Assembly: GCA_965637545.1 (NCBI GenBank)
Contig: OZ281498.1
Span: 8,432,001-8,496,000, forward strand
Direction: 5' to 3'
Source of the DNA: Phallusia mammillata
Lineage: Eukaryota
Length of the DNA: 64,000 nucleotides
Below are positions 501 to 17,701 of this stretch, piece after piece (within the stretch, counting starts at the first letter, position 1; the number at the start of each line of letters is the position of its first letter). Both the position numbers and the translations under genes were made by a program. The notes below the pieces were generated by a model that worked only from the letters and a program-made list of their open reading frames with translations, was not told the DNA's origin and made no database searches.

Positions 501-745
501 CCTTGCTCAAAGTATTATGGATGTTTACAATTGACCCATACAACCACCATCATTTTCAGTTATACGCAATATTTGTTTTAAGGAACCTTATTACCTGCAG
601 GTAAAGTATTAGTTACACCTCACAAAAATGTTTCGTTTTTTAACCAGTAACTAAATTTTAAATGATTTTGAATTCATTATCACAGGTTTACATTTTTAGC
701 AAATATAATTTTGTTTCTGCTCTGCAATTTTTTTCTAAACTAAAT

Positions 746-1771
746 ATGGCCAACAACACTTCAACATTGGACGATACTTTCACGACTGTAAGTAAATCGA
801 CAATCATTGAAAAGTTCGCAGTTGGATCTGTGATTGCAATAACGGGTTATCTGACAATAACTTCGTTTGTATATCAGCTGTATTCACAACAGCAAGGCTT
901 GCAACTCAACAACCGAATTTGCACAGCCTCTTGTTTTTTGTTGCTTCTGGTGGGATTCCTTTTGATGATTGAGATTAATTTAACTGTGTTTGACACTACA
1001 GTGTGTACTTGGATAGAGAATGTGGCTGTTTTCCCAGCCAGCATTTCGTTATATCTTGTTTACTTTTCTTTGTGGCTTCGCCAGCGTTCAGTGTATAAAA
1101 CAGTTCACTCCAAGAAGGTGTGGTTGGAAAGAGCGAAGATTTTGAGCAAATTTGTTCTTGCTGGCATCACGTTTTTTACACTCCTGCAAATTGCAGCTGC
1201 ACTCACCAACAAAACGGAACATTGGCCAATAAAGAGATGCATCTCAGAACCTATCACACTTCGCTTTGTAATGGCAAGTTCAGTGGGTCTAGTTCTCTTT
1301 CAAATTTCACTTCTGATTCTGTATCTTTTACCTTTATCGACACACTACAGATTCTTGACGGGAACAAAGGGTGTCTATATTCGTAGTGCTTCGTGCACTG
1401 CAGTATGTGTAGCATCTGCAATTGCTTTCGTTTCCCTGATACAACTTTATCGTTTCTTGATATTGAACCTTGACTGGCTGACACATCCAGTTTTGGCAAG
1501 TATTGGCCTTAATTATTACATCATGAATGTCTTTGCATCGATTTTTTCTTTTCCTGATTACAAGAAACGATTGTTTCCCTTCAAGATGATTCAGATTCGA
1601 AAATTGGGAAAAGTCCATCCATCCGAAACTGCAGACAACGGTGGTGTGTGGAATGCCGAATCGCGAACAGCTGCAGGAAACGCTGAAGGAGAAAATATTG
1701 AAATGCAAGTCTTTAGTATCTCGGAGAAAATCAACAGCAAATGGGAGCCAGTGGAAATGAAAGAACAATAA
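746..1771 (+). CDS. Intronless orphan seven-transmembrane (GPCR-like) protein, 341 aa
   Basis: ORF 662-1771; likely start is Met29 at 746 (MANNTS, an N-glycosylation sequon in a short N-terminus). Seven hydrophobic segments, a Cys at the top of TM3 (CTWIE), LWLRQRSVY after TM3, FQISLLILYLLPL in TM5 and SFPDYKKRLFPF after TM7. No DRY or NPxxY. AATAAA overlaps the stop codon. Confidence 0.8.
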   Translation: MANNTSTLDDTFTTVSKSTIIEKFAVGSVIAITGYLTITSFVYQLYSQQQGLQLNNRICTASCFLLLLVGFLLMIEINLTVFDTTVCTWIENVAVFPASISLYLVYFSLWLRQRSVYKTVHSKKVWLERAKILSKFVLAGITFFTLLQIAAALTNKTEHWPIKRCISEPITLRFVMASSVGLVLFQISLLILYLLPLSTHYRFLTGTKGVYIRSASCTAVCVASAIAFVSLIQLYRFLILNLDWLTHPVLASIGLNYYIMNVFASIFSFPDYKKRLFPFKMIQIRKLGKVHPSETADNGGVWNAESRTAAGNAEGENIEMQVFSISEKINSKWEPVEMKEQ

Positions 1772-4090: not shown

Positions 4091-6327
4091 CTTAATGGTG
4101 ATTCAGATTAGCAAAATTGGAAAAAGTTCGTTCCTCCGAAGCAGTCAACAATGGTGTGAAAAAATCAGCTGCAAATCAGAGCCAGTCCAAATTAACAAGT
4201 GATGAAAAATATTTATATTATATCTTGTTTTTGCGAATCTTTTTTGGTGGACGACTTCATGACAAACCTTATTGACCGAGGGCGCATGCTGTATCTTTAA
4301 CTTCATAAACAAGACCCATTGAACCCAGAAGACTTATCATTTACTGCAGTGTTTGTTAACCTTTTTACCGCTCGTACCCTTTAAGCTTTCATGAAATTTT
4401 CTCGTACCTCCTGTCTACAATGGCCGACGCAAAGAAAATTGTAATAATAGGAATTAAACTCAGTGTATTTATAACTTGCATGTTCAATGCATGCATTAAC
4501 ACAGTATTGTAAGTAGTGCAAACCAACCCGTTCTAAACATATAACAAAGTAACTTGTTACACATTCTTCACAAATATGCCAAATTAGCGTATAATTTCAC
4601 GCTACATTTCGTACCCCCGTTTTACAACAAATTTATTGCAATTTGTACATTTTTATGTAACAAGGTGGCCGCCGTTGATGTTTGTTCGACCATCAAAAAA
4701 ACAGTGCGTCATCAGTCTTGTACACATTCGCTTTGACGTAACATGTGAGACCAAAACGATAATAAATAACAAATCATCAGAAATAATTATTGTTAAGAAA
4801 TGAAAGCGTTAAGCATTGTCACCGAGATACCATATCTACCACAATAGGACATGCTACTAAGGTTTTAATCGCACGATTTATGTAATATAGCTATGGGTTG
4901 CCTAATATAAAGGTTGTTTTGTTTGTTTTAAGCCCGCAAAAACTGATTGATTGCAACATCGTTTGTGAAAAAACAAACTAAATAGAACTATTCAGGACGT
5001 TTTTAAACACTACAAATTCTTTCTCAAATCAAAAACCTACAAAACGGAGTAACGCTTACATGCAGTACATTTAAGGTTAAAATAACGTATTTTCGTTTCA
5101 ACACAAGTTCCGTTTTTGTTTTGTGTAAACTTATTTCACTCACCTCAAGCAAGCGAAACCACAACATCGAACTATAGTAACCTTTGCAATCACGTAAGTA
5201 ATTATACCCGATGACCTAATCTACTTGTGTGCTACAAAAAACATAGCGTCACTGACCAAGTAATGAGAAAAGCAGTATTCTATGCTGCCTCCCGTACCTC
5301 AAGACTGCATGACACAGTGTTGTTTATAAGTAGCAGTTGATTTCAGATTATTTGTGTGGTTTCTTGCGATTGTTTGCACAAAAATTCAGGATTCTTCTTA
5401 GCTTAGTCATTGTTCATACAATCAGACGTACAATGAATCAGACCTACAAATACTTTTGGGGTATTACCCTGTGATTTTGTGGTATTTATTAAGCGAGGTT
5501 TCAGTGAAACAGACATTTAGAACTTCAACACACACACACATGTGTTGTTAGAACAGCGCTTATCAGAGTACGCAAACTTTAAGAACAGGTATTGTATTGA
5601 AGTCAAGAAATTGTGGCTGTAATTTTCAATTACATAGCTGTAGCTCGATAAAGTTAGCCAATCGTAGACTCATAAGTAACTAGAAGTACAGTGTCGTTGG
5701 TACGAAATTTGGTTAAACTAGTAATTTGTGTTTCAAAAGTGTTTAACATTTGGGCTTGCTAGCTAGATACATGTAATTAAAACAGTGTCTAATACACTTC
5801 TAGTGAAAAACAAGCAGCCAACTTTTATGTGAATATAATTTGAGTTTTCTGACTATATACACGCATGGATTGTTCAAAATGTGTTTTGAACGTGTTTTTT
5901 CTCAAAACAATTTACTCGACAAACTGGGCAAACTGTTTTGTTTCAACATAGCGGAACAGCTACCTCGTGTTAATTCTGATAAACTAAATTCAACTAGCGG
6001 GGAAGTCAAACACAGGCGCTTGGTCTGCGCAATTCTGAGTCACGTGCAGTCGTGACGTGTATAGCAACTGGCGTGTCGTAGGCGTGACCGCGCAACTGAA
6101 GTTGCAAATGTTCGTGTGACTTTAAGTTTTTTGTCAGACGGGAAAGTACACGCTATTTAAAAACGCTCACAGCATTCTTTGTTATAATAGCCTGGTAGTG
6201 GTTAGAACAGAACGCCGTTCTTAACTGGTTTACTTGTTTTCAACATGCAGCACTATTTTTCATCTCAATTAACTTGTTAAGCTAGTTTGTTACCACTACT
6301 AACTACTGTCAGTTGCACAACTAAAGC

Positions 6328-8412
6328 ATGACATCAGCTGTTATGTTACGTCACAATGAAGAATATTCCGTCACAATCGAGGAAGACAATGCGTCGGAAA
6401 TTGTAAACAATATCATGATACCTAATCGAAATGTGATGCCCATTACGACTGAAACTTACAGAAACGAGCATGGGATGTTAGTATCAACTGTCCCCTGCTC
6501 ATGGGATGAAGCCAAAAGAAAGCTAAATGCCGGGGATCTTCTGTTCGGAAGGTTAGAATTGTTAGATTGAAGTTAGCAGTCCAATCTATGTTGATTTTCA
6601 AACGGTATTCATTTGTACAGCAAATTTAGATAAATAATAAGGTGAAACAATTTTGTCATGGGTGTCATTACCTAATAGAGAGAATGTTTTCGTACCAAAC
6701 CATACTGTTGTTTTAGGCGTTAATACAGAAACTAGCGTTCCTTTTTTCGGCATAATTTTTAAACTTATATTTTAAAATAACTTTTACATTACATAATATC
6801 GGGATTTTTCACAGCGCTATTACGGAACATATCCTAATAATTACTAAAATAATTGTGACAAATAGATTTTGTCAACATCTTTTGTGCAACTCGTTAATTG
6901 CGATTTTAACATCTTATTAATGCAAACTTTTTATCTCAACATTATTTACACGACACAGATCACCCGAGGGAGCAAGGATTTACAGAAATGCTTTGACCAG
7001 GATTAAAACGGATTGGGATTCAGTGGACAGTTATTGCAAGCACCGTTTCCTTGGTTACGAATACGCCACTAAAACTCGACAAGCGAACGGGGAACCACCA
7101 AGAATGGTAAACTACGTGAAAGAAGATGCAACTCCAGGTTAGAAGACATTTTTGTGTTGTTCATAAAAATAAAGCGTATTTTTTGTATAAACGTCATATT
7201 TTTTTTCTTTATTAAAACTGTTACTGTTTAAAGCACTTGTACTATTTTCAACTTTGACACAAAAAATGTGCAAGCTTAACGAGATGTTTGAAAAACAATG
7301 TGCACTAAGAAGCCTATAATTTTACAATATGTGTTGCAAAATACGCAACAGAACACTGTTCACAATTCGTCATAAGCGGCTGTGTATTTTTGACGTGAAT
7401 ATTTTGACCCTAATGGACCTCATTAATTGTTAAAAAGCATTACATTCAGCACCCAAATTTTGATGAAAAAGATTACAACATGTTCAGCACGCAATAAAAG
7501 CTGCTACATCAGAGTTGTAAGTCACATATTGTGCACCGAAAAACACCTTATTTCAGACGATATAGGCCAGGGGTTCCCAACCGTTTTACGATCTCGTACC
7601 ACTTGGACTCTCTTTGCTGCCACGCGTACCACTTCTTGCAGAACAACTAATTTGATCATATTTTAGTTGGAAGCGGAATATTAGCCTGCTAAAATAACAA
7701 TAAAGCACTACAACTAAATTGAATTAGATTTTTGTTTACTGTCCACCAATTGGTCAACAAAACCAGATGAACAAAATATAAAGTTGTAAATCCAGGTTTT
7801 TGTGGGGAAAAAACTGAAGCTACTCGCGTACCACCTGAAAAACCTTCGCGTACCACAGATTGGGAACTCTTGATATAGGCTTAAGATTTTAGCGGGTAGG
7901 GTTTATACAGATAAACGTAGGGATTAACGCAGCAATTTGATAAATACAATGTAAGTGAAATACTGTACTAGCGATGTAAGTGAAATTACCCAACAAACAT
8001 GACTTTACCAATTGGGCTAGCTTGAATTCAGCCTGATTTTTTAAGAATACTTGAGCTTGAAGTCCTAAACCTGGCCCAAAACCGACCGTAATACGTCCTT
8101 AAAGGTCTACGTATCCTTTATGTAGAACAACTTTATTTTACAGGCCGCCAAATCGCTCTGGTGAAAAACGACTTTCCTTACAATCTTACAAATGAAATGA
8201 TCCACTACACAATTTGGGCAACCGGAAGTCAGCCTACGTCATCATACGTCAGTGCCATAGAAATGATGTTTCCTTCAACGCGTTACGAAGTTTTGCTTTT
8301 CGAAAATTTGAACAAAAACAAGTCGGTAAAAACTGTCGAGCACTCCCATCTTTACGTTCGAAAGCGACCAAGCATTGTTACGTCACATAACGTAATGCGC
8401 GCGTCGCTTTAA
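6328..8412 (+). CDS. DUF3605 / GIG1-family HIT-like protein, copy 1 (223 aa, 3 exons)
   Basis: join(6328-6551,6959-7137,8144-8412); GT-AG introns of phase 2 and 1, 672 nt. Family motifs: SWDEAK..LLFGRSPEGARIY, IKTDWDSVDSYC, KNDFPYNL...IHYTIW, FENLNKNKSVKTVEHSHLYV. Family assignment is by motif recognition, not a search. Confidence 0.85.
7568..7872. mobile_element. hAT MITE in intron 2 of DUF3605 copy 1, 305 bp
   Basis: Left TIR CAGGGGTTCCCAACC; degenerate right TIR GATTGGGAACTCTTG. TSD ATATAGGC (7560-7567 and 7873-7880). Confidence 0.88.
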
Positions 8413-9276
8413 CTTGAATTATTTGTTTTTATTTTATTTATTTATTTATGTCCGACTGTCAAAAAAATAGTTTTGTTTGTTTATTTACGTCGTGCAAAAT
8501 ACAACAAAAAACGTATTTCTTGCAGAAAAAACATTTAAATTCAACACCATGCACTAGCCGATTTAATAACGATTGATTCAGAAATGCAGTTTTTACCTTT
8601 TAATAGTTTTGTTTGTAAGAAGTAAAACAATCATAAAACAATTTTAATGTTTTAGAATCTGAACCTTAATGTTTGACTTTGTCGTCTGTAACATACTATA
8701 GTAATAAACTGCATTCAAAGTGCATTTTTAAATGCCTAAATTTTCGACACATATAGTTAGTAATTCTGTCTCTGATTTCAAAACCTTTACGTGATCAAAA
8801 AACAAACACACCCACTGTATCCTATTTTATTAAATACTTCCAACCTTACAAACGTGACGTGTTACACCAGCTGTGCAAAAACGTGCGGTGACGCAATGGT
8901 TATAAAAATACTATTAACGCTTCTTTTTTAGCTATGGCATAAAAAGTCATGGAAAGCCAAAACGAAATAGCAAAACGCAACGTTGGAGTTAATGTGTTTT
9001 GGAAGGTCAGGAAATAGCCTTAGCTGTCTGTGTTTAGGTTACGTATGTTGGTTGCACATTTAAACAGTCAAACGTTCAATTCATTTAAGGAATTTTAGTT
9101 TTAACATAACAGTACCTTCAGTTTCGTAGCCAACATTAAAGTGCATAGTTTAGGGTAACTGCATATCATTTGGTCAAAAAAAGTAAAGCTATTTCTCATC
9201 ATCACGAAATGTAAATCTACGCGTTTAGTTTTGTGTTGACTTATTCTTGTGTACAGGCACTACTGTATTCTGTGAA

Positions 9277-9672
9277 CAGGGGTGCCATACCGTCCTTATT
9301 TCTAAGATTTGTCCTTATTTTGAAGGGCAATGTCTTAAAATGGAAAAATGTAAAATGCATTTTCCTTATTTACAAGAAATTTCCTTGTTTTTGACGTGAG
9401 TTCTGATTTTGTCTTATTTTCAACACTTACAAGTCAAATCCATGCTGCAAGCAAAAGTAAACCTATAGACCGGAGCTGTCGTGAGATGCACGAAGTATTT
9501 TCTACGAACAAGAAGTTGCTGGAACAGATTGTTAGTGGCAAAAAATATGTCATATGACATGTCATGGCTTTTATAAATACAAAAAATGGTTCCAAAATGT
9601 TTGTTTCATTACATGTGAAATTTTAATTTTTCGATTGTTCTTATTTTAGGGTCCATGTCGATGGCAACCCTG
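9277..9672. mobile_element. hAT MITE family A (CAGGGTTGCCA...TGGCAACCCTG), 396 bp
   Basis: TIRs CAGGGGTGCCA / TGGCAACCCTG; diverged TSD TCTGTGAA / TCTATGGA. Internal sequence matches the copies at 56122-56459 and 57916-58553. Confidence 0.85.
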
Positions 9673-9869
9673 TCTATGGAGCATAAATTTTGTTGACTTT
9701 TTAGTAGCAAAAACTGAGTGTATCCCCGTTCGCCTGTAATGCACAGGAAATACGTGATGTAGTCTGTCTGTTGTGGTAAAAAAGCTTAGTTTGCCTCGCA
9801 AGCGTGTGTACATTGTGCAGCAACTGTTCGTAGATTTCATTAAACTAAATGCAAATTATGACGTAATCT

Positions 9870-10046
9870 CAAATATATGCTCCATAGACAGGGTTGCCAT
9901 CGACATGAACCCTAAAATAAGAACAATCGAAAAATTAAAATTTCACATGTAATGAAACAAACGTTTTGGAACCATTTTTTGTATTTATAAGAGTCATGAC
10001 ACGTCATATGAAATATTTTTTGTCAGTAGCAATCTGTTCCCAGCAA
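9870..10046 (-). repeat. Inverted duplication of 9516-9692 (fold-back arm)
   Basis: Near-exact reverse complement of the 3' part of the MITE at 9277-9672 plus about 20 bp of its flank (TCTATGGAGCATA). Spacer is about 177 bp. Confidence 0.9.
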
Positions 10047-10817
10047 TGTCAGCGCCGTCATTCAAGCTTGCCCATAGTCCAATGCTTTTCCGGCCATTTT
10101 TTCTGCCGACGGAAATTAGTCGTTTAAGCGCAGTTCTAAATAATGGTTGTGTTGAAGTTTTGTTAAATGGTTCAGTTGAAACTGCAACTGGCGAAAGGCT
10201 CAGTTAAAGCAAAGTGTGGGTTTAGGCAAGAATAGAAGACAATACATGGTTTGCAAATAGTTTCTAAGTTGCTATGTCAACTCGCTTTCGAGCGTAGCGG
10301 TCGCGTGCTTTCAAATCATCATTTTGGCACTTTGGTTTGGCTAAGCATGAAGTAATGCAAAATTTTACCTATGCAAGCATGACTTTTCGTTCCCATGGAA
10401 AATATATGTTGTTTGAGGTGTGTGGCATTGAGCGGTGTAACTTTATTGTACCGTGTGTTCTCATGAATCAAAATACTTAGAAGAAGTCCATATTCAGTGT
10501 AGTTGTTCCCTCAGTGTTACATGTTCCTGACTTCCTGTTTTAAACAGTCTGCCATAAGATGGGCAGTTGCATAAACCAGGTATGTCGAGATAGTTGCAGC
10601 AAGTGTTACAAATCATAATAATGAACTTACTCGCTACTGCAGACGACCGATGCAAACCACCAGAAGCAGAAGAAACAACAAGCTTCCGAGTAAAGAATAA
10701 CATAGCCCAGGAAGCTCAGCTGACGCAGGAGAACATTTCCAAACTAATGGTCAGCTCAAGACCTTGTTATTCAATGCTGGAACTCCGCGCACGCGCACTT
10801 GTGCCTAAACCATCTTA

Positions 10818-11071
10818 TATGGGTTACACTGAGTCATTCGAATATGTCACACAAATGTAGAGAAACGCACACGAAACAATAACCGTTGTAGGTTGCAGAT
10901 TTAGACTTATTTTGTCTTGTGTTACAGGTAAAATAAGGGGTTATTATGGGTTACACTGTGTCATTCGAATATGTCACACAAATGTAGAGTAACGCACATG
11001 AAACAATAGCCGTTGTAGGTTGCAGATTTAGCCGTATTTTATCTTGTTTTGCAGCAAAAATAAGGGGTTAA
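10818..11071 (+). repeat. Tandem duplication of a 127-bp unit
   Basis: TATGGGTTACACTG(A/T)GTCATTCGAATATGTCACACAAATGTAGAG...AAATAAGGGGTTA starts at 10818 and again at 10945. Confidence 0.9.
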
Positions 11072-11159
11072 CTAAAAATCGTTGGAAAGTTTGTGGTTAA
11101 TAATTTTCTACATGTAACTGCCCTTTGCACCCGACTAAACAGGGATCAAAGTCCGTACA

Positions 11160-12391
11160 ATGAATGGGTTCGACCCTGAACTGATGAATGAAGTCATTGG
11201 CGACATCACAACTGTAAGATACAGTTGGGAAATGGTCTTGGAGTTACTTAAAGAGCCCGATTTCAATTTTAAAAGGTTCGTTCAGTTTTTAAAGGCTATT
11301 TGAAATGAACCGTTGGCTTTAATAATTTAGACATGTAACAATTTATATGACTCACTTTTTTAATTCACTGCACCTTTTTCACACCTTTTAAAAGTTATGC
11401 TAAATTAAACCCAAATTTCAAATATTTACCGAAGTCAAATAACGAAAAAAATGTGGCCTATGTAGTGTCAGTCCCGAATCAAGCACGTTGTATTTAAACT
11501 GAAACCCTAACCCGGCCCTTCTTACAACTCTAATTCAAATTCAAAGGTGCATTTTCCACATTACCGTTTTGTTGAGGTTTTGCAAGAATACTATGTTTGC
11601 AAACTCTCGAGAAAAAGATTTCTTTAACCAGTTATAAAAAACGATATACGTGTGTGATTTGAGGTCTGCAGAAGGACATTACAAGTATGCAAAAGACTCG
11701 CATAAAGTCAAACAGGAATGGAACGATTTAAACAGCTACTGTAAACACACTTTCTTTCAATACCCGTACAAAACTAAGGAACTAACGGACCAGGATGGAA
11801 AAACAAGGACTGTAAAATATGTGGACGACGGAGAAACATGTAAGTTTCTTTAGTGGCGATAAGCTAAAACGCAAACCAAAATCATTAGGTCACAAAAATT
11901 AGATTAAGTTTCCTCAGCAGCAATGTAAAACCTTCGCGAACTGATTATACTAAACATCTATGGTGTCATTTTTTAGACTGTGTATTTTAAATTACACAAC
12001 CAATTTGTAATTTGAAAATAGAGTACAAATTACGCAGTTAAACAAGTCCGTTGTCTAAATGTCAAAACTCTAAAACTAATCCGGTGATTGGTTTATAAAC
12101 ACAGGGCCAACAATAACGTTTTGTCGGAATAACTACCCATACTACCTCGAACCAGAAATGTTGCACTACTGCTTATGGACAACCAAGCATTTAAGTGCAG
12201 ATGAATGCAAGACGATAGTGGAAATGTATTTTCCACGAACAAAATACGATGTTATTATCTTTGAGACGCCGAACAGCCTAAAATCTATACCAGACACACA
12301 TCATTTTCAAGTGATAGTGCGACCTCGGCAGACTGGCTTGCTGTACGTGAAAATTGACGGTTTTGAGGAGAAATCTATTTGGACAAGTTGA
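11160..12391 (+). CDS. DUF3605 / GIG1-family HIT-like protein, copy 2 (192 aa, 3 exons)
   Basis: join(11160-11275,11664-11839,12105-12391); same intron positions and phases as copies 1 and 3. Motifs YSWEMV, RSAEGHYKY, RNNYPYYLEPEMLHYCLW, FETPNSLKSIPDTHHFQV. The intron 1 acceptor is a weak GAG. Confidence 0.78.
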
Positions 12392-13407
12392 TGTTTAAAC
12401 CATTACTAGAGCAATTGGTATTTTCAGATTGGTGTTTTATACCCTTTCGCGTAGTTTTGTTGCACATGAGTAGCATTTATACGTAACGATAAAAAAATGT
12501 TTGTAAAACGACCGACTGTTGTATCCTACCAGGTTTTTGCGGCCGGTTGCCATCTTACGGCAGCACATATCCAGAACACAGAACAAAGGCATCATTCAAA
12601 AAACAGGACTCGATAACCCATGTTTTTTGTGCCTATGCTGGTTTGCGTTACCGTTGACACAAAATGCAAATTAAATATAATTTGACATGAAAAAAATCTA
12701 AACTTAAAAACAATGGAAAAGGTATTGTTCAGCCAACGGTAAACGTGGGAATATTGTGTCCAGCCAATATGGCCATATTTTTAAACTAGCAAAATTAGGG
12801 TTGAGAAAAGAGAAACAGTGCTGCATCACACAAATTCAAGTCAGCACCAAAATTAAGCCAAAAAGTTTTTTGGGTTTGTTTAGTGAAAGTACAATTGTGA
12901 CGTGATATAATATGCGTATACACCAAGCCGGAAATATCTGTTTGACGTAACATTTCTGTCGGCAAAGCTATTTGAATCAAAACATACACAAAAAGGTTTT
13001 GTGAAATTAAAGAATAACATCATTCAGTTGTTCAATTGAGTTAAGCTTGTACTTTTGTCGTTAAAATGGCAGCTCTGTCATATATTACTAAAATCAATTA
13101 CCAGTTCAGAAATACCTACGTTACAAGATAGTAGTTGGGTTTAAATATAGCTTAGAACATTTGTAGCTATCGACCTAACTTAACAATTCTTTCACCAATA
13201 TGTGGTCCTGCAATGGACCACGTAGGCATTTTAAGTGGACCGCAGAGTTATGCTATTTGGACATGTAATCATCTGCTACAGGAAAAATATGTTTTCTACA
13301 TGAGGCTATATATAAGAGACATATGGTAGAAACATTTTTAACGACTGGGCGTTTGTTACTTATTGACCGTTGAACCCGATCGGATTTACTATCGAAAAAA
13401 ATCAAGA

Positions 13408-14826
13408 ATGAATGGTTTTGACCCTGAAGTAATGAAAGAAGTTTTTGGCGAACTTACAACAGTGAAATACACTTGGGAAATGGTTTTGGATTTACTTAAG
13501 GAACCCGATTTCCATTTTAAAAGGTTTGTTAAAACAAAGATTTGAACTTCAGTGTATGTAACATTCAAAAGCACTGCCATATTGTAGTTACATTGACTTA
13601 AAGTGCCTTCCCTGATTAGTAGTTTCTAGTAATCTTATTATTTATAATTTCCTAAAGCATAAATTGCCTTCTCTAAACTGGTAGCTAGGCTAGTTTCTAG
13701 TAGCCTATTAGTTGTAGTGCTTTAAAGTGCCTTCCCAAAAATTAGTAGTTACAAGTATTATTTGTACTGCTTAATAGTGCCTTTCCAAAATTCGCCTTTC
13801 GGTCGAAATTGAGAAAAATGACCTTTATTGGTAAGATCCTGCTAGAAGAGATTGACCTTGTACAAGTAATATATTACTCCTTCATAGGTCTGCTGAAGGG
13901 CATTATAAATACGCAAAGGCTACACCGAATGCAAAGCAGGAATGGAAAGACTTGGACAGTTACTGCAAACACACTTTTCTTCAATGCGCGTACAAAACCA
14001 AGCAGCTAACGGATTCAGATGGGAAAACTAGAACAGTAAAATATGTGGATTGCGAAGACGAAGGTACAAGCTTCTAAACTGTTTCCGGTAGTTTGTTTTA
14101 TGAAGGCGGAATTAGCAATACCTATCCATCAAAAGTTTGGAGTCAAACAACTAATAATAGAAAAACATGAGGCAGTACATACAATATGAAATGTGGTTCA
14201 CCTTTATAACAGTAATTAAATGTGTTATATCGTAGGCTATAGCAGAAACAATTTACCAGTTTGGCCAGGTCAAAGCCACAATTGCTGAAAGACCGCTAAC
14301 GTAAAGCGCGATTTTAGAAATAGCCCCAATACTAGCCAAATGTTGCCGCAAATTAAATTGCCTATAAAATCGAAAATAAAGACAGTATTTTGACAACCCA
14401 TTTCAAAAAGCGCAACCCGCAACTCCACCTGAAAACGAAGCACAATTAGGCTACAAAACCGCCACCTTAGCAACAACCACAAACCATTCATTAGGCCAAC
14501 CGAACAAATCTAATGTATAACTTACAGACACAGGGCCAACGTTGACGTTTTGTCGGAACAACTACCCATACAATCTTGAACCAGAAATGCTCCACTACTG
14601 CATATGGACTACGAAGCGTTTAATTGCGGACGAATGCAAAGCGTTAGTGGAAATGTTTTTTCCACGCACGAAATACGACATAGTCATTTTTGAGAATCCA
14701 CACAAACTCCAATCGTTCCCTGATATTCACCACATCCAGGTCATAGCGCGACCAAAGAAAAGTGGTTTGCTGTACGTTAAGATCGACGGTTTTGAAGAGA
14801 AATCAGTAAGGACAAAGTATTGTTAA
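13408..14826 (+). CDS. DUF3605 / GIG1-family HIT-like protein, copy 3 (194 aa, 3 exons)
   Basis: join(13408-13523,13888-14063,14534-14826); canonical splice sites; the first two exons are the same length as in copy 2 (116 and 176 nt). Motifs RNNYPYNLEPEMLHYCIW, FENPHKLQSFPDIHHIQV. Confidence 0.85.
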
Positions 14827-17701
14827 ACGAAATTGTGTTTCAGTGCTTTGTAGTTGCATACTAAATAATTACATTTGTTACAAAAGTATTGCTTTTGTTG
14901 CCGAACTATAATTTTGAAATCATTAGAAAGCTTTCATACTTTTTCTCACGTTTAACTCTTCATTAGGGAGTAAAAAAATAGTTTTTACGCTATTCCATTA
15001 GAACACTTCCAACAAAAAAATACCTAATTCCAACAGCACACAATCTGTTATCACCTTCACATCGATGTATTTAATTTTGCGCAAAAAAACTAAGTTTTCG
15101 GAACAATACACTGTGGTTGTTTCATTACCTTTCTTTTGATGTTGTCCACATTTTTTAGATCTAGCAGCGTGACAAGCCACTCTCATTTTCAGCTAGTTGT
15201 GACACAAAATTGTTCTAAGAATCTAAGGCAATAAGTACAGTCCTTTTCTACAGCGTGTCGGAATATATCATTTTAGCAAAATTCGTGGTATATTTTTTGC
15301 TCTATGTGCCAATAGTTGAAAAGCAATGCAAAAGATTAAACGGTCCGTCATAAAACAAACTTTCCAAAGCCCTGACCTGTGTTAACAGGTCAAATTATCA
15401 AAAACCGCAAATACGAATTTAATTCAAAACAAGCCGACTTTACTGCTTGCAAAGACGGATGTTTGTAAAATAGCAAACAAATTGCCTATATAACAAACCG
15501 CCAAAATACGCAACCGCAATGAAAACTCGATGTCAAAAACTAGCCTAGTTGGGAGGGAAAACCGCCACCCTAGATTCAAAGTACTTTCTGATCTTCAAAT
15601 CAACAAACGACGACATTTCAAGCGATTGTATCGCTGAATTTACCCGTGTAAATGTATTTCACCCAATGCATTATTTCCTGAATGGGGCAGACGACAGACA
15701 CTAGTATAAAAGTGTTACAACACAAACCGGCCAATCACAGTCCGTCACGTAAGCAAAGGCAAACGGATGACGAATGAGAGGGACAATAGTAATTTACGAA
15801 ATCAAAAAAAAACGTGTGAATTCGCCAAAACTTACAAAGCAAGGCACAGCAAATGTAGTACAAATATTTGAGTGGGCCTTCTATAAAGGGTATTTCACGT
15901 TACAGCAAATATAGGAGGCCATTAGCCCCCCAATGCACAAAGAAATCTTCACAGGAAGGGATTTTTTCTTAACGTTCGCTTTTTTTATTGTACTGGCAAA
16001 TTAGGGAGGTATTTTTGGAAAAAAAGCGTAAGTTTTGCCCCAACATATAGTTTTCTAACCCAATAAACTGAATTTTGTTTTCTACTATAGAGTGCAGTGT
16101 ATTGATAAGCAAAAATATGTAAACAAACAATCTATAAAGTATTCGGATTCTACTCAAAGAACAACGAAACTTTTGCACAAAAAAGTATGTTTAGAACAAA
16201 ATGTACAACTTTTGTGAATTGTAATCTCTCTTAACTAGTTGGTTATAGTAGAGTTGCCTGTTTCCAAAAGGCGATGTATTTTCAGAAAGAAAAGAAATAT
16301 AAATACTTTAGACTTGGGAATTGTTTGTTTTTTCGCAATTTATCACACTTTTTCGCCATGAGTTTTTGTAATTGGGTAAACTGTGTAATTCACACAAATC
16401 GCCATTTGAAAACAGGCAGAAGCTATACACCTGACGTGTACATGTTACTACTAACAGTGGGTGAAGAATAATATTGCACCATGTGAAAATCATGAGTCAT
16501 GCTAGCTGTTAGTTAAAGCAGATGAACTTATGACACACCAAAAATGTAAAGACCAAACAAATGGATAGAAAGCGTTGAGTTATCCAGAAAAAAATGTATG
16601 AGGCTTTGTCTTGGACTGTTACGTATTTGTATCCCGTAATTTTTCCTGTAAATTTTATAGTAACATAGCAGTATGCTTTCTAATTAGTTAGGCAAACTTA
16701 GTTTTGCAACTTTGTGACATACCTTGAATTTTATCATATCATACAACGACATCTTAGCTTTTAATTGGCCTACAAAAAGAATAGTTTTACCTTGTTATCA
16801 AAAACACATGGGTTAAAACACCATAATGTAGTCGTATATACCTATTGGTCCACCCAAGCAACATTAGTAGAACGTGGTTGTGTATGCTGAGTACGCTTGT
16901 GAAGTTGTATAGTTGCAATATTTAGTTACACAACAAAAAGTTTGGTTGGAATTTTGTAGAGCACAAAAAATGCTGACAAGGCAAAAATACTAAGGACTTA
17001 TATAACGGCCAGTGCAATACAGAAAGTATAGCCTACTAATAGTATTTTGAAAATAACACAATTGCTTGGTATTTTTATAGGTTGAAATGACCAAGTTGGC
17101 TAAAAATGTTGCAATGCCAACGCTTTGCTTATTTTAGTAATTTCCGGCCAAATTGTTGAGTAGAAGATTGACTGAAATGGTAACCTTTCTTCAGAAGGTC
17201 TGGATAATGTAAACGGTCATGATCCCAACAGAGTTGACTGATTGTCAAATTCTTTAACACTTTTTTATCCAGCAACATGATTCCGTGTTTGTTTTTTTGT
17301 CTTGCATACGACATTTTCCATTTCAAAATTCTTCCAAATTCGCAAATTTTGGGTTCCAAGGATATTTTGACCACAGCTCAGTGCGATACACCACTGGACC
17401 GGGTCTACCAATACCAACATACCTTATAATTGGCCAGCTTTTCGTATTACTATATGTGACTAATCAATTCCAAGACCATATCTTCTTGGCAGTGCTTTTG
17501 GAATTTAAAACTGCTACGGCCAAAGAAAGAAAGAAAAAAATCTATACACCAGATACTGAAGAACAAAAAAATGCGATCTCAAGAATTAGGGGCTTTCCCG
17601 CCGCTCGCTGATGACGTCAATCGGGGAACTTGGGCTAAAGTTGAAGAACACGACTTGCGGCGGATGAGAGGAGCGACGTAGGTCGGATGAGAGGATGGAA
17701 C

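Follow-up and report, generated by a model that had tools for sequence, protein, structure and literature searches.

The DUF3605 family is mainly non-animal, and a tandem trio of such genes in the ascidian Phallusia mammillata raises the question of whether these are working genes of the host, what their proteins might bind, and how the family came to be there. Our preferred reading, to which we assign a probability of about 0.6, is that the locus holds a tandem trio of intact, spliced host genes of the HTC/DUF3605 family whose proteins would contain a putative channel for a phosphate-bearing ligand.

Gene models, transcripts and host status

Within the window, the whole 64-kb stretch of DNA that we analysed, we identified three three-exon genes on the plus strand, at 6328-8412, 11160-12391 and 13408-14826 (copies 1, 2 and 3, with 223, 192 and 194 codons, respectively; Table 1). 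All six introns, as read from the sequence, are bounded by GT and AG, and the three genes have both intron positions and phases in common, as had been claimed for this same-strand trio in a preliminary description of the locus. Intron 1 lies in phase 2 within the Arg codon of F-x-R^S (^, exon boundary), and intron 2 lies in phase 1 a few codons 5' of N-(D/N)-(F/Y)-P-Y. None of the three copies has a broken reading frame or splice site. Exon 1 of copy 1 holds 74 codons as against 38 in copies 2 and 3, giving a longer N-terminus, and its last ~32 residues (43-74) are collinear with annotated proteins of Clavelina (P0154) and Ciona savignyi (P0017). We found no copies beyond these three in the 64-kb window using tblastn with each exon peptide, no Rfam RNA families on 5000-16500, and nothing useful when three neighbouring ORFs were searched against Pfam. 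No signal peptide is evident in the trio proteins, which are therefore presumably cytosolic.

Table 1. Exons of the three genes (window positions; ^ marks an exon boundary)
Feature	Start	End	Strand	Remarks
Copy 1 exon 1	6328	6551	+	ATG 6328; 74 codons plus 2 bases; donor AG^GTTAGA, phase 2
Copy 1 exon 2	6959	7137	+	begins R^S-P-E-G; motif W-D-S-V-D-S-Y-C-K-H; donor G^GTTAGA, phase 1
Copy 1 exon 3	8144	8412	+	K-N-D-F-P-Y...H...W...E-N...H-S-H; stop 8410-8412
Copy 2 exon 1	11160	11275	+	ATG 11160; transcript contig begins at or before 11054
Copy 2 exon 2	11664	11839	+	both flanking joints in X1, 3' joint also in X2
Copy 2 exon 3	12105	12391	+	N-N-Y-P-Y...H...W...E-T-P...H-H-F-Q; stop 12389-12391; 3' UTR to at least 12451
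Copy 3 exon 1	13408	13523	+	ATG 13408; 76% identity with its copy 2 counterpart
Copy 3 exon 2	13888	14063	+	78% identity with its copy 2 counterpart; GT..AG, same phases
Copy 3 exon 3	14534	14826	+	N-N-Y-P-Y...H...W...E-N-P...H-H-I-Q; stop 14824-14826

Transcript contigs came from four runs (X1-X4), which we took as putative RNA. For copy 2, a 745-nt contig from X1 joins 11054-11273/5, 11662/4-11839 and 12105-12451, indicating that both introns are spliced. The first of these joints, called as 11273 to 11662 with 'GT..AG (cut +2)', equals 11275^11664, and the second, 11839 to 12105 with GT..AG, is found both in this contig and in one from X2, which belongs to a second study. For copy 1, the match of exon 3 contigs ends at 8141 in all four runs and is followed by 30 letters identical to the end of exon 2 (7105-7134); these contigs of 703-832 nt extend 438-477 nt upstream of exon 3, leaving room for exons 1 and 2 and a short UTR. 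Exons 1-2 of copy 3 had no transcript cover in the four putative RNA runs.

Assembly contamination by a fungus or protist, or a set of dead duplicates, would be another way to account for such a trio, and both the mainly non-animal distribution of the family and the missing transcript cover of copy 3 could be read in that direction. However, the locus lies 8.4 Mb inside a large contig (the assembly totals 240 Mb), its base composition matches that of its flanks, the DNA between copies 1 and 2 includes an interspersed host repeat for which there are at least 1410 candidate copies, and spliced transcript contigs were recovered from two studies bearing the same organism label. With regard to dead duplicates, the intact frames and splice sites and a dN/dS of 0.085 between copies 2 and 3 argue against decay. 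Contradicted by splicing, by the host repeat, by the intact frames and by this dN/dS, contamination or decay is extremely improbable, and the earlier assertion that these are host genes, made from the shared introns, is upheld.

Family membership and conserved residues

The preliminary description had placed the trio in DUF3605, alongside Htc1/YPL067C of yeast and Gig1 of Candida, and had named a scan against PF12239 as the way to check this. When exons were scanned singly against that Pfam profile (length 154; gathering cut-off, 23.6 bits), the last exons of copies 1, 2 and 3 scored 35.7, 34.2 and 37.0 bits, respectively, over profile positions 69-154, all above the cut-off; exons 1 and 2 alone gave no match to Pfam DUF3605. 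A PDB sequence search returned 5KCI, the structure of Htc1, as its sole match, and a profile of relatives aligned with residues 14-171 of 5KCI (E 3e-29), placing His104, His166 and His168 on conserved columns. These scores and the match to 5KCI bear out the family assignment. The trio is the correct annotation of an already catalogued, uncharacterised family, and neither 'DUF3605' nor 'YPL067C-like' occurs as a term in any searchable paper.

Our searches were made by single exons, with database orthologues as full-length proxies. The fold of one such proxy, a Styela orthologue, is Htc1-like and weakly similar to HIT proteins. The trio differs from canonical HIT proteins (Hint, Fhit, aprataxin, DcpS and GalT) in that the motif H-phi-H-phi-H-phi-phi is absent, copy 1 having no more than H-S-H, and copies 2 and 3 no more than H-H-x-Q, and in that the triad is spread over ~60 residues; moreover, Htc1 is monomeric, has a channel and is without known nucleotide activity. 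The exons matched neither the Pfam HIT family nor anything in an NCBIfam scan.

The 'histidine triad with channel' family, equivalent to Pfam DUF3605, was founded on Htc1/YPL067C of Saccharomyces cerevisiae (PDB 5KCI), to which the ascidian proteins are only ~15-19% identical. The ascidian genes also differ by their two introns and by an exon-2 motif, (D/N)-S-Y-C-K-H; the position of His168 is taken by Gln in copies 2 and 3, which also carry an extra His before the position of His166; and yeast has one gene where the P. mammillata genome has five. Candida albicans Gig1 belongs to the same family according to the literature and is similar to Htc1 (PMC8658026). Its defining features are that GlcNAc induces it and that it affects sensitivity to nikkomycin Z, both known only for fungi, the one group in which the gene has been tied to GlcNAc regulation (PMC8658026, PMC12176254).

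Within exon 3, copy 1 carries the loop N-D-F-P-Y followed on the next strand by H-Y-T-I-W, and copies 2 and 3 carry N-N-Y-P-Y followed by H-Y-C-(L/I)-W; the counterparts in Htc1 are N92-Y96, H104 and W108. Alignment of the five exon-3 peptides gives the dispersed triad (H104, H166 and H168 of Htc1) as H/H/H in copy 1, H/H/Gln in copies 2 and 3, and Asp/H/H in two family copies on contig C6. Across 88 relatives, which include very distant lineages, one His is invariant, and the columns of N-D-F/Y-P-Y, the Asn and the second His are more than 90% conserved. Copy 1 alone has the full set of near-invariant residues, with four of the five paralogues deviating; in copy 2, for example, the Asn of E-N-P is replaced by Thr (E-T-P) in addition to the change of the third His to Gln. 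The latter change is found in ~13% of 158 relatives, and Gln at this position thus appears to be a family variant that would not exclude its bearers from DUF3605/HTC.

Divergence, age and origin

Applied to the whole genome, the Pfam model detected only copies 2 and 3, and a paralogue profile search found at least five members. Copies 2 and 3 had been described as close paralogues with many silent changes, and copy 1 as divergent with a longer N-terminus, and the measured values fit on both counts. The exons of copies 2 and 3 are 74-78% identical (pS 0.66, pN 0.12, dN/dS 0.085), and alignment is lost in their introns and flanks (45-61% identity); the exons of copy 1 are 35-41% identical to those of either (36-41% for exon 2). 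With about two thirds of silent sites differing and a dN/dS this low, the duplication that gave rise to copies 2 and 3 must be old and its products constrained.

The named full-length relatives are ascidian, and comprise Styela clava XP_039250403 (automatically named 'YPL067C-like') and XP_039249751, Ciona savignyi H2ZKS9, and Clavelina lepadiformis CAK8698593 and LOC143448273. These automatic annotations, for which no tandem trio is recorded, are orthologue-level relatives at only 35-50% identity and align collinearly with copy 1 through each of its exons, exon 2 being 45% identical to Clavelina P0155. More distant relatives were found in early-diverging fungi (chytrid, monoblepharid and glomeromycete), a giant-virus contig and marine plankton sequences, and atlas clusters fall in Mucoromycota, Oomycota, diatoms and Nucleocytoviricota. 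There was no non-ascidian animal among the ~15 named relatives, themselves a minority of matches. A word-index protein search gave no candidates with exon 3 alone, under a length limit that shuts out full-length proteins, nine matches with a 12-sequence profile and three with an 88-sequence profile.

In trees that are poorly resolved and unrooted, copy 1 and the annotated ascidian proteins form one clade (SH-aLRT 94-97). In quick exon-3 trees the two C6 copies, like copies 2 and 3, fell outside this clade, a placement that we rejected: a single clade of all tunicate-type rows lies 10 log-likelihood units above the free tree and is not rejected (AU p 0.61), and the copies in question share with the ascidian clade its introns and the exon-2 motif, which is common to the tunicate-type clade. 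Both introns are also found in L005 and three eukaryote contigs (L011-L013). Since the family is found with these introns in other eukaryote contigs and is annotated in three ascidians, it is not peculiar to P. mammillata but old within ascidians, the ancestor common to those sampled being the latest date for its presence. The five-member family of P. mammillata has two lineage-specific introns in common, and the pair formed by copies 2 and 3 arose later than the ascidian ancestor, is itself old, and is under strong purifying selection. The suggestion of a lineage-specific expansion therefore stands only in part: the genome does hold five members, but of the events behind them only the duplication of copies 2 and 3 is lineage-specific.

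How the family reached tunicates is a further question. Horizontal transfer into the tunicate stem, with a fungus, protist or giant virus as donor, followed by the gain of two introns and by expansion, would fit the distribution described above, in which all named animal relatives are ascidians and the others are fungal or viral. It would also fit the absence of the tunicate intron positions from three fungal genes (Cladochytrium, Hyaloraphidium and Rhizophagus) and the presence within the tunicate-type clade of an intronless relative from Tara marine metagenomes. However, the 'tunicates only' pattern is drawn from the minority of matches that are named, the trees have the weaknesses noted above, and presence in fungi and one animal lineage also fits vertical descent within opisthokonts, with losses. 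Moreover, because intron turnover is high in both fungi and tunicates, unshared introns say little about origin. We consider transfer rather unlikely. Unlikely, too, is the fuller scenario of a family confined among animals to tunicates, acquired by ancient transfer, with two introns gained and paralogues in the states H/H/H, H/H/Q and D/H/H. The transfer of cellulose synthase into tunicates is a parallel case, and were this scenario true, the family would be a second foreign enzyme domesticated by tunicates. Should the family prove absent from other animals, it would illustrate, at the base of the chordates, either gene transfer or differential loss.

A putative phosphate-ligand channel

The protein would form a single alpha/beta domain as in Htc1, distantly like HIT proteins, in which the N-D-F/Y-P-Y loop, the His of the next strand, the Asn of E-N-P and the C-terminal H-x-H are predicted to form the lining of a narrow channel. 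In the crystal of Htc1, a sulfate occupies this channel close to His166 and His168 (PMC5028414 supplement). We propose that the channel is a putative site for a phosphate-bearing small ligand, whether a nucleotide, a sugar phosphate or a sugar nucleotide, and that the invariant His, equivalent to His166, would serve as a key binding or catalytic residue. Judging from its full set of residues, copy 1 probably still has the activity of the ancestor. In copies 2 and 3, a shift in chemistry or specificity is more probable than a loss, as they are still constrained.

The departures of four of the five paralogues at near-invariant positions could also mean that catalysis has been lost.

Alternatively, the protein could be a non-enzymatic binder or chaperone, its channel holding an unfolded peptide terminus and suppressing aggregation, with the paralogues differing in their clients. 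The one biochemical finding on Htc1, that it inhibits amyloid formation in vitro, calls for no catalysis, and a pure binder would more easily tolerate the replacement of triad residues seen in four of the five paralogues and in many relatives. An invariant His accompanied by other columns conserved above 90% is, however, seen more typically in a small-molecule site, an oxyanion is present there in the crystal, and the fungal gene is co-regulated with GlcNAc catabolism and not with stress chaperones. Taken with the amyloid result, this evidence leaves a chaperone role distinctly improbable.

As to the preferred reading of a phosphate-ligand channel, DUF3605/HTC is a family widespread in eukaryotes and giant viruses with a solved structure, and its members are not known to have any activity or ligand, which counts against that reading. 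Five constrained paralogues, differing among themselves in the conserved triad and Asn, would give a natural mutational series for what the channel binds, and ascidians such as Ciona allow knock-out and imaging.

Gene structure, expression and host origin of the tandem trio

The preliminary description had placed a same-strand trio of genes with common intron positions and phases at 6328–14826. Our gene models bear this out, the two ends of the interval coinciding with the start codon of copy 1 and the stop codon of copy 3. All six introns are bounded by GT and AG and measure 265 to 1006 nt. In each copy intron 1 interrupts F-x-R|S between the second and third bases of its Arg codon, and intron 2 falls between the first and second bases of a codon a short way (a few codons) upstream of N-(D/N)-(F/Y)-P-Y. 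A tblastn search of the whole window with the nine exon peptides found no further gene beyond copies 1–3. Two more members of the same genome's family, L004 and L005, lie ~3 Mb apart on contig C6. L005 has both introns at the positions and phases of copies 1–3 and starts with M-T-S-A like copy 1; L004 has the phase-1 intron, and its first exon was not found.

Gene models of the tandem copies (window coordinates) and locations of the two further DUF3605 paralogues, with departures from the near-invariant residues
Gene	Location	Strand	Codons	Sequence read	Departures
Copy 1	exons 6328-6551, 6959-7137, 8144-8412	+	223	6200-8500	none
Copy 2	exons 11160-11275, 11664-11839, 12105-12391	+	192	11000-12480	third triad position Gln; Asn of E-N-P to Thr
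Copy 3	exons 13408-13523, 13888-14063, 14534-14826	+	194	13260-14900	third triad position Gln
L004	G000:C6:4239496-4242732	-			first His to Asp; Asn to Thr; Pro to Thr
L005	G000:C6:7253931-7257158	+			first His to Asp; Asn to Ile; Trp to Leu

As had been proposed, copies 2 and 3 are close paralogues (74–78% identical in protein and 75–84% in exon DNA, with introns and flanks at background identity), and copy 1 is divergent from both (35–41% identity), with a first exon of 74 codons versus 38. The longer N-terminus of copy 1 is supported by the last 32 residues of its exon 1 (...P-C-S-W-D-E...F-G), for which annotated ascidian proteins have a counterpart collinear with those of exons 2 and 3. 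Counts summed over the three exon pairs of copies 2 and 3 gave a pS of 0.66, a pN of 0.12 and a dN/dS of 0.085, indicating that the duplication is old and that both copies are under purifying selection.

Five sequencing runs that share their organism label with the DNA runs containing the stretch had 6–12% of its sampled words, as expected of exons; that these five are RNA is a guess, and four of them were mapped onto 8100–14099. A single 745-nt contig spans copy 2 (11054–11273, 11662–11839 and 12105–12451) with GT..AG joints, the first of which was given as "cut +2", corresponding to 11275|11664; the joint 11839|12105 also occurs in a contig from a second study. For copy 1, exon-3 contigs from all four runs end at 8141 and continue into 30 letters equal to 7105–7134, the end of exon 2, the CAG at this joint fitting either side. 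Upstream, 438 and 477 nt remain in two of these contigs, leaving room for exons 1 and 2 (403 nt) plus a short leader. Exons 1–2 of copy 3 had no contig cover in the four putative RNA runs, which does not imply silence.

Contamination is ruled out by the transcript-like contigs, by a position 8.4 Mb along contig C5 (assembly size 240 Mb), by a G+C content (35–38%) equal to that of the flanks, and by a host repeat between copies 1 and 2. This SINE- or MITE-like interspersed element of ~285 nt (9277–9560) is spread over all large contigs, with at least 1410 candidate copies that are ~83% identical. In the transcript contigs the first 45–60 nt of the element reach very high depth and are preceded by many different sequences, and intron 2 of L004 contains a related piece (about 2190–2240). 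Elsewhere in the window, a single-exon ORF of 369 codons (662–1771, forward strand), lying just downstream of a run of N at about 220–450, encodes several hydrophobic stretches and has no Pfam hit.

Family identity, fold and conserved residues

Each last exon alone exceeds the Pfam cut-off for DUF3605, and copies 1–3 thus belong to this family, as first suggested. In agreement, the sole PDB sequence match was 5KCI, the structure of yeast YPL067C/Htc1, which a profile of 88 relatives matched over residues 14–171 (E 3e-29). The structure paper introduced the name HTC ("histidine triad with channel") for the family and identified the latter with DUF3605; the Htc1 triad is dispersed over about 60 residues, and a sulfate lies beside His166 and His168 in the crystal (PMC5028414). 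With the full-length orthologue Styela P0006 as proxy and an 88-row alignment, the predicted fold (pLDDT 95.2) is that of Htc1: 5KCI was retrieved with an E value of 3.7e-5 in a Foldseek search with the model, in which HIT proteins reached about 0.2.

Two residues, Trp130 and His172 (Styela numbering), do not vary among the 88 relatives, and Arg40, Tyr48, Asn114, Pro117, Tyr118, His126, Asn160 and position 174 (His) are more than 90% conserved. Profile alignment equates His126, His172 and position 174 with Htc1 His104, His166 and His168, so that the residues around the oxyanion of the Htc1 crystal are, by alignment, conserved. A rough motif count over 158 relatives gave H/H/H in 83 and H/H/Q in 17, making Gln a recurrent variant. 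We suggest that this small protein would be cytosolic and would bind a phosphate-bearing ligand in its predicted channel, where the invariant His would play the central part; copy 1 would be ancestral-like, and copies 2 and 3 may have shifted in function. The main functional rival is a non-catalytic, chaperone-like role, which would follow the reported inhibition of amyloid formation in vitro by Htc1 (PMC5028414).

The literature confirms the background given earlier on Htc1, Gig1 and the fungi: Candida Gig1 and its counterparts in Yarrowia and Trichoderma belong to the family, are regulated by GlcNAc and have no known activity (PMC8658026, PMC12176254). A GlcNAc or chitin link for the ascidian genes, borrowed from this fungal regulation, is speculation.

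Distribution and age of the family

At a threshold of E ≤ 0.001, an exhaustive search with a profile of the five exon-3 peptides returned 852 representatives, no E value being lower than 1e-30. The nearest clusters include ascidians (three proteins of Clavelina lepadiformis, two of Styela clava, and Ciona savignyi) and fungi (Cladochytrium, Hyaloraphidium, Rhizophagus and Acaulospora); atlas clusters cover Mucoromycota, Oomycota, diatoms and Nucleocytoviricota. DUF3605 in ascidians is already present in automatic annotation, one Styela protein being auto-named "YPL067C-like". Among hits with an organism name there was no vertebrate or other non-ascidian animal, which is weak evidence.

Trees built on 149–171 columns were unrooted and poorly resolved; in them copy 1 formed a clade with the named ascidians and four further rows (SH-aLRT 94–97). 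Constraining all five genome paralogues into this clade changed the log-likelihood by +10 relative to the free tree (AU p 0.61). Copy-1-type genes on three sparse-ORF eukaryote contigs (L011–L013) have both introns, each placed and phased as in the tunicate genes. Contig L028 carries a copy-2/3-type gene in which the matches to exons 2 and 3 are separated by about 1.45 kb. In three fungal genes the introns lie at other positions. Taking the constrained-tree likelihood together with the introns and exon-2 motif held in common, we read a single tunicate family that had split into three or more types ahead of the divergence of the sampled ascidians, a later duplication giving copies 2 and 3. The lineage-specific expansion initially proposed therefore holds for that duplication only, and not for the family, which is old in ascidians. 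DUF3605 may have reached tunicates vertically or horizontally, the trees being unrooted and most hits lacking an organism name.

Tara marine metagenomes and metatranscriptomes yielded further relatives, among them one without introns. This protein, P0022 (L008–L010, Tara Oceans contigs; 183 residues), groups within the tunicate-type clade and has retained the D-S-Y-C-R motif, with ~880 nt upstream lacking a called gene; its candidate source is either a pelagic tunicate or a sister lineage outside the animals. The DUF3605 gene of metagenome locus L006 (ERZ22666121 Scaff274382, 6001–6474) looks like a giant-virus copy, given its gene-dense 100-kb contig and the adjoining C962R-type primase. A weak NUDIX hit lies nearby, and the N-terminal half is still alignable with the tunicate proteins. 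In Cladochytrium replicatum (L022, JAHLKD010000001.1, 1–2133), the DUF3605 gene stands head to head with a gene for galactose-1-phosphate uridylyltransferase, a HIT-superfamily sugar-nucleotide enzyme, with ~230 nt between them, a single case that may be chance.
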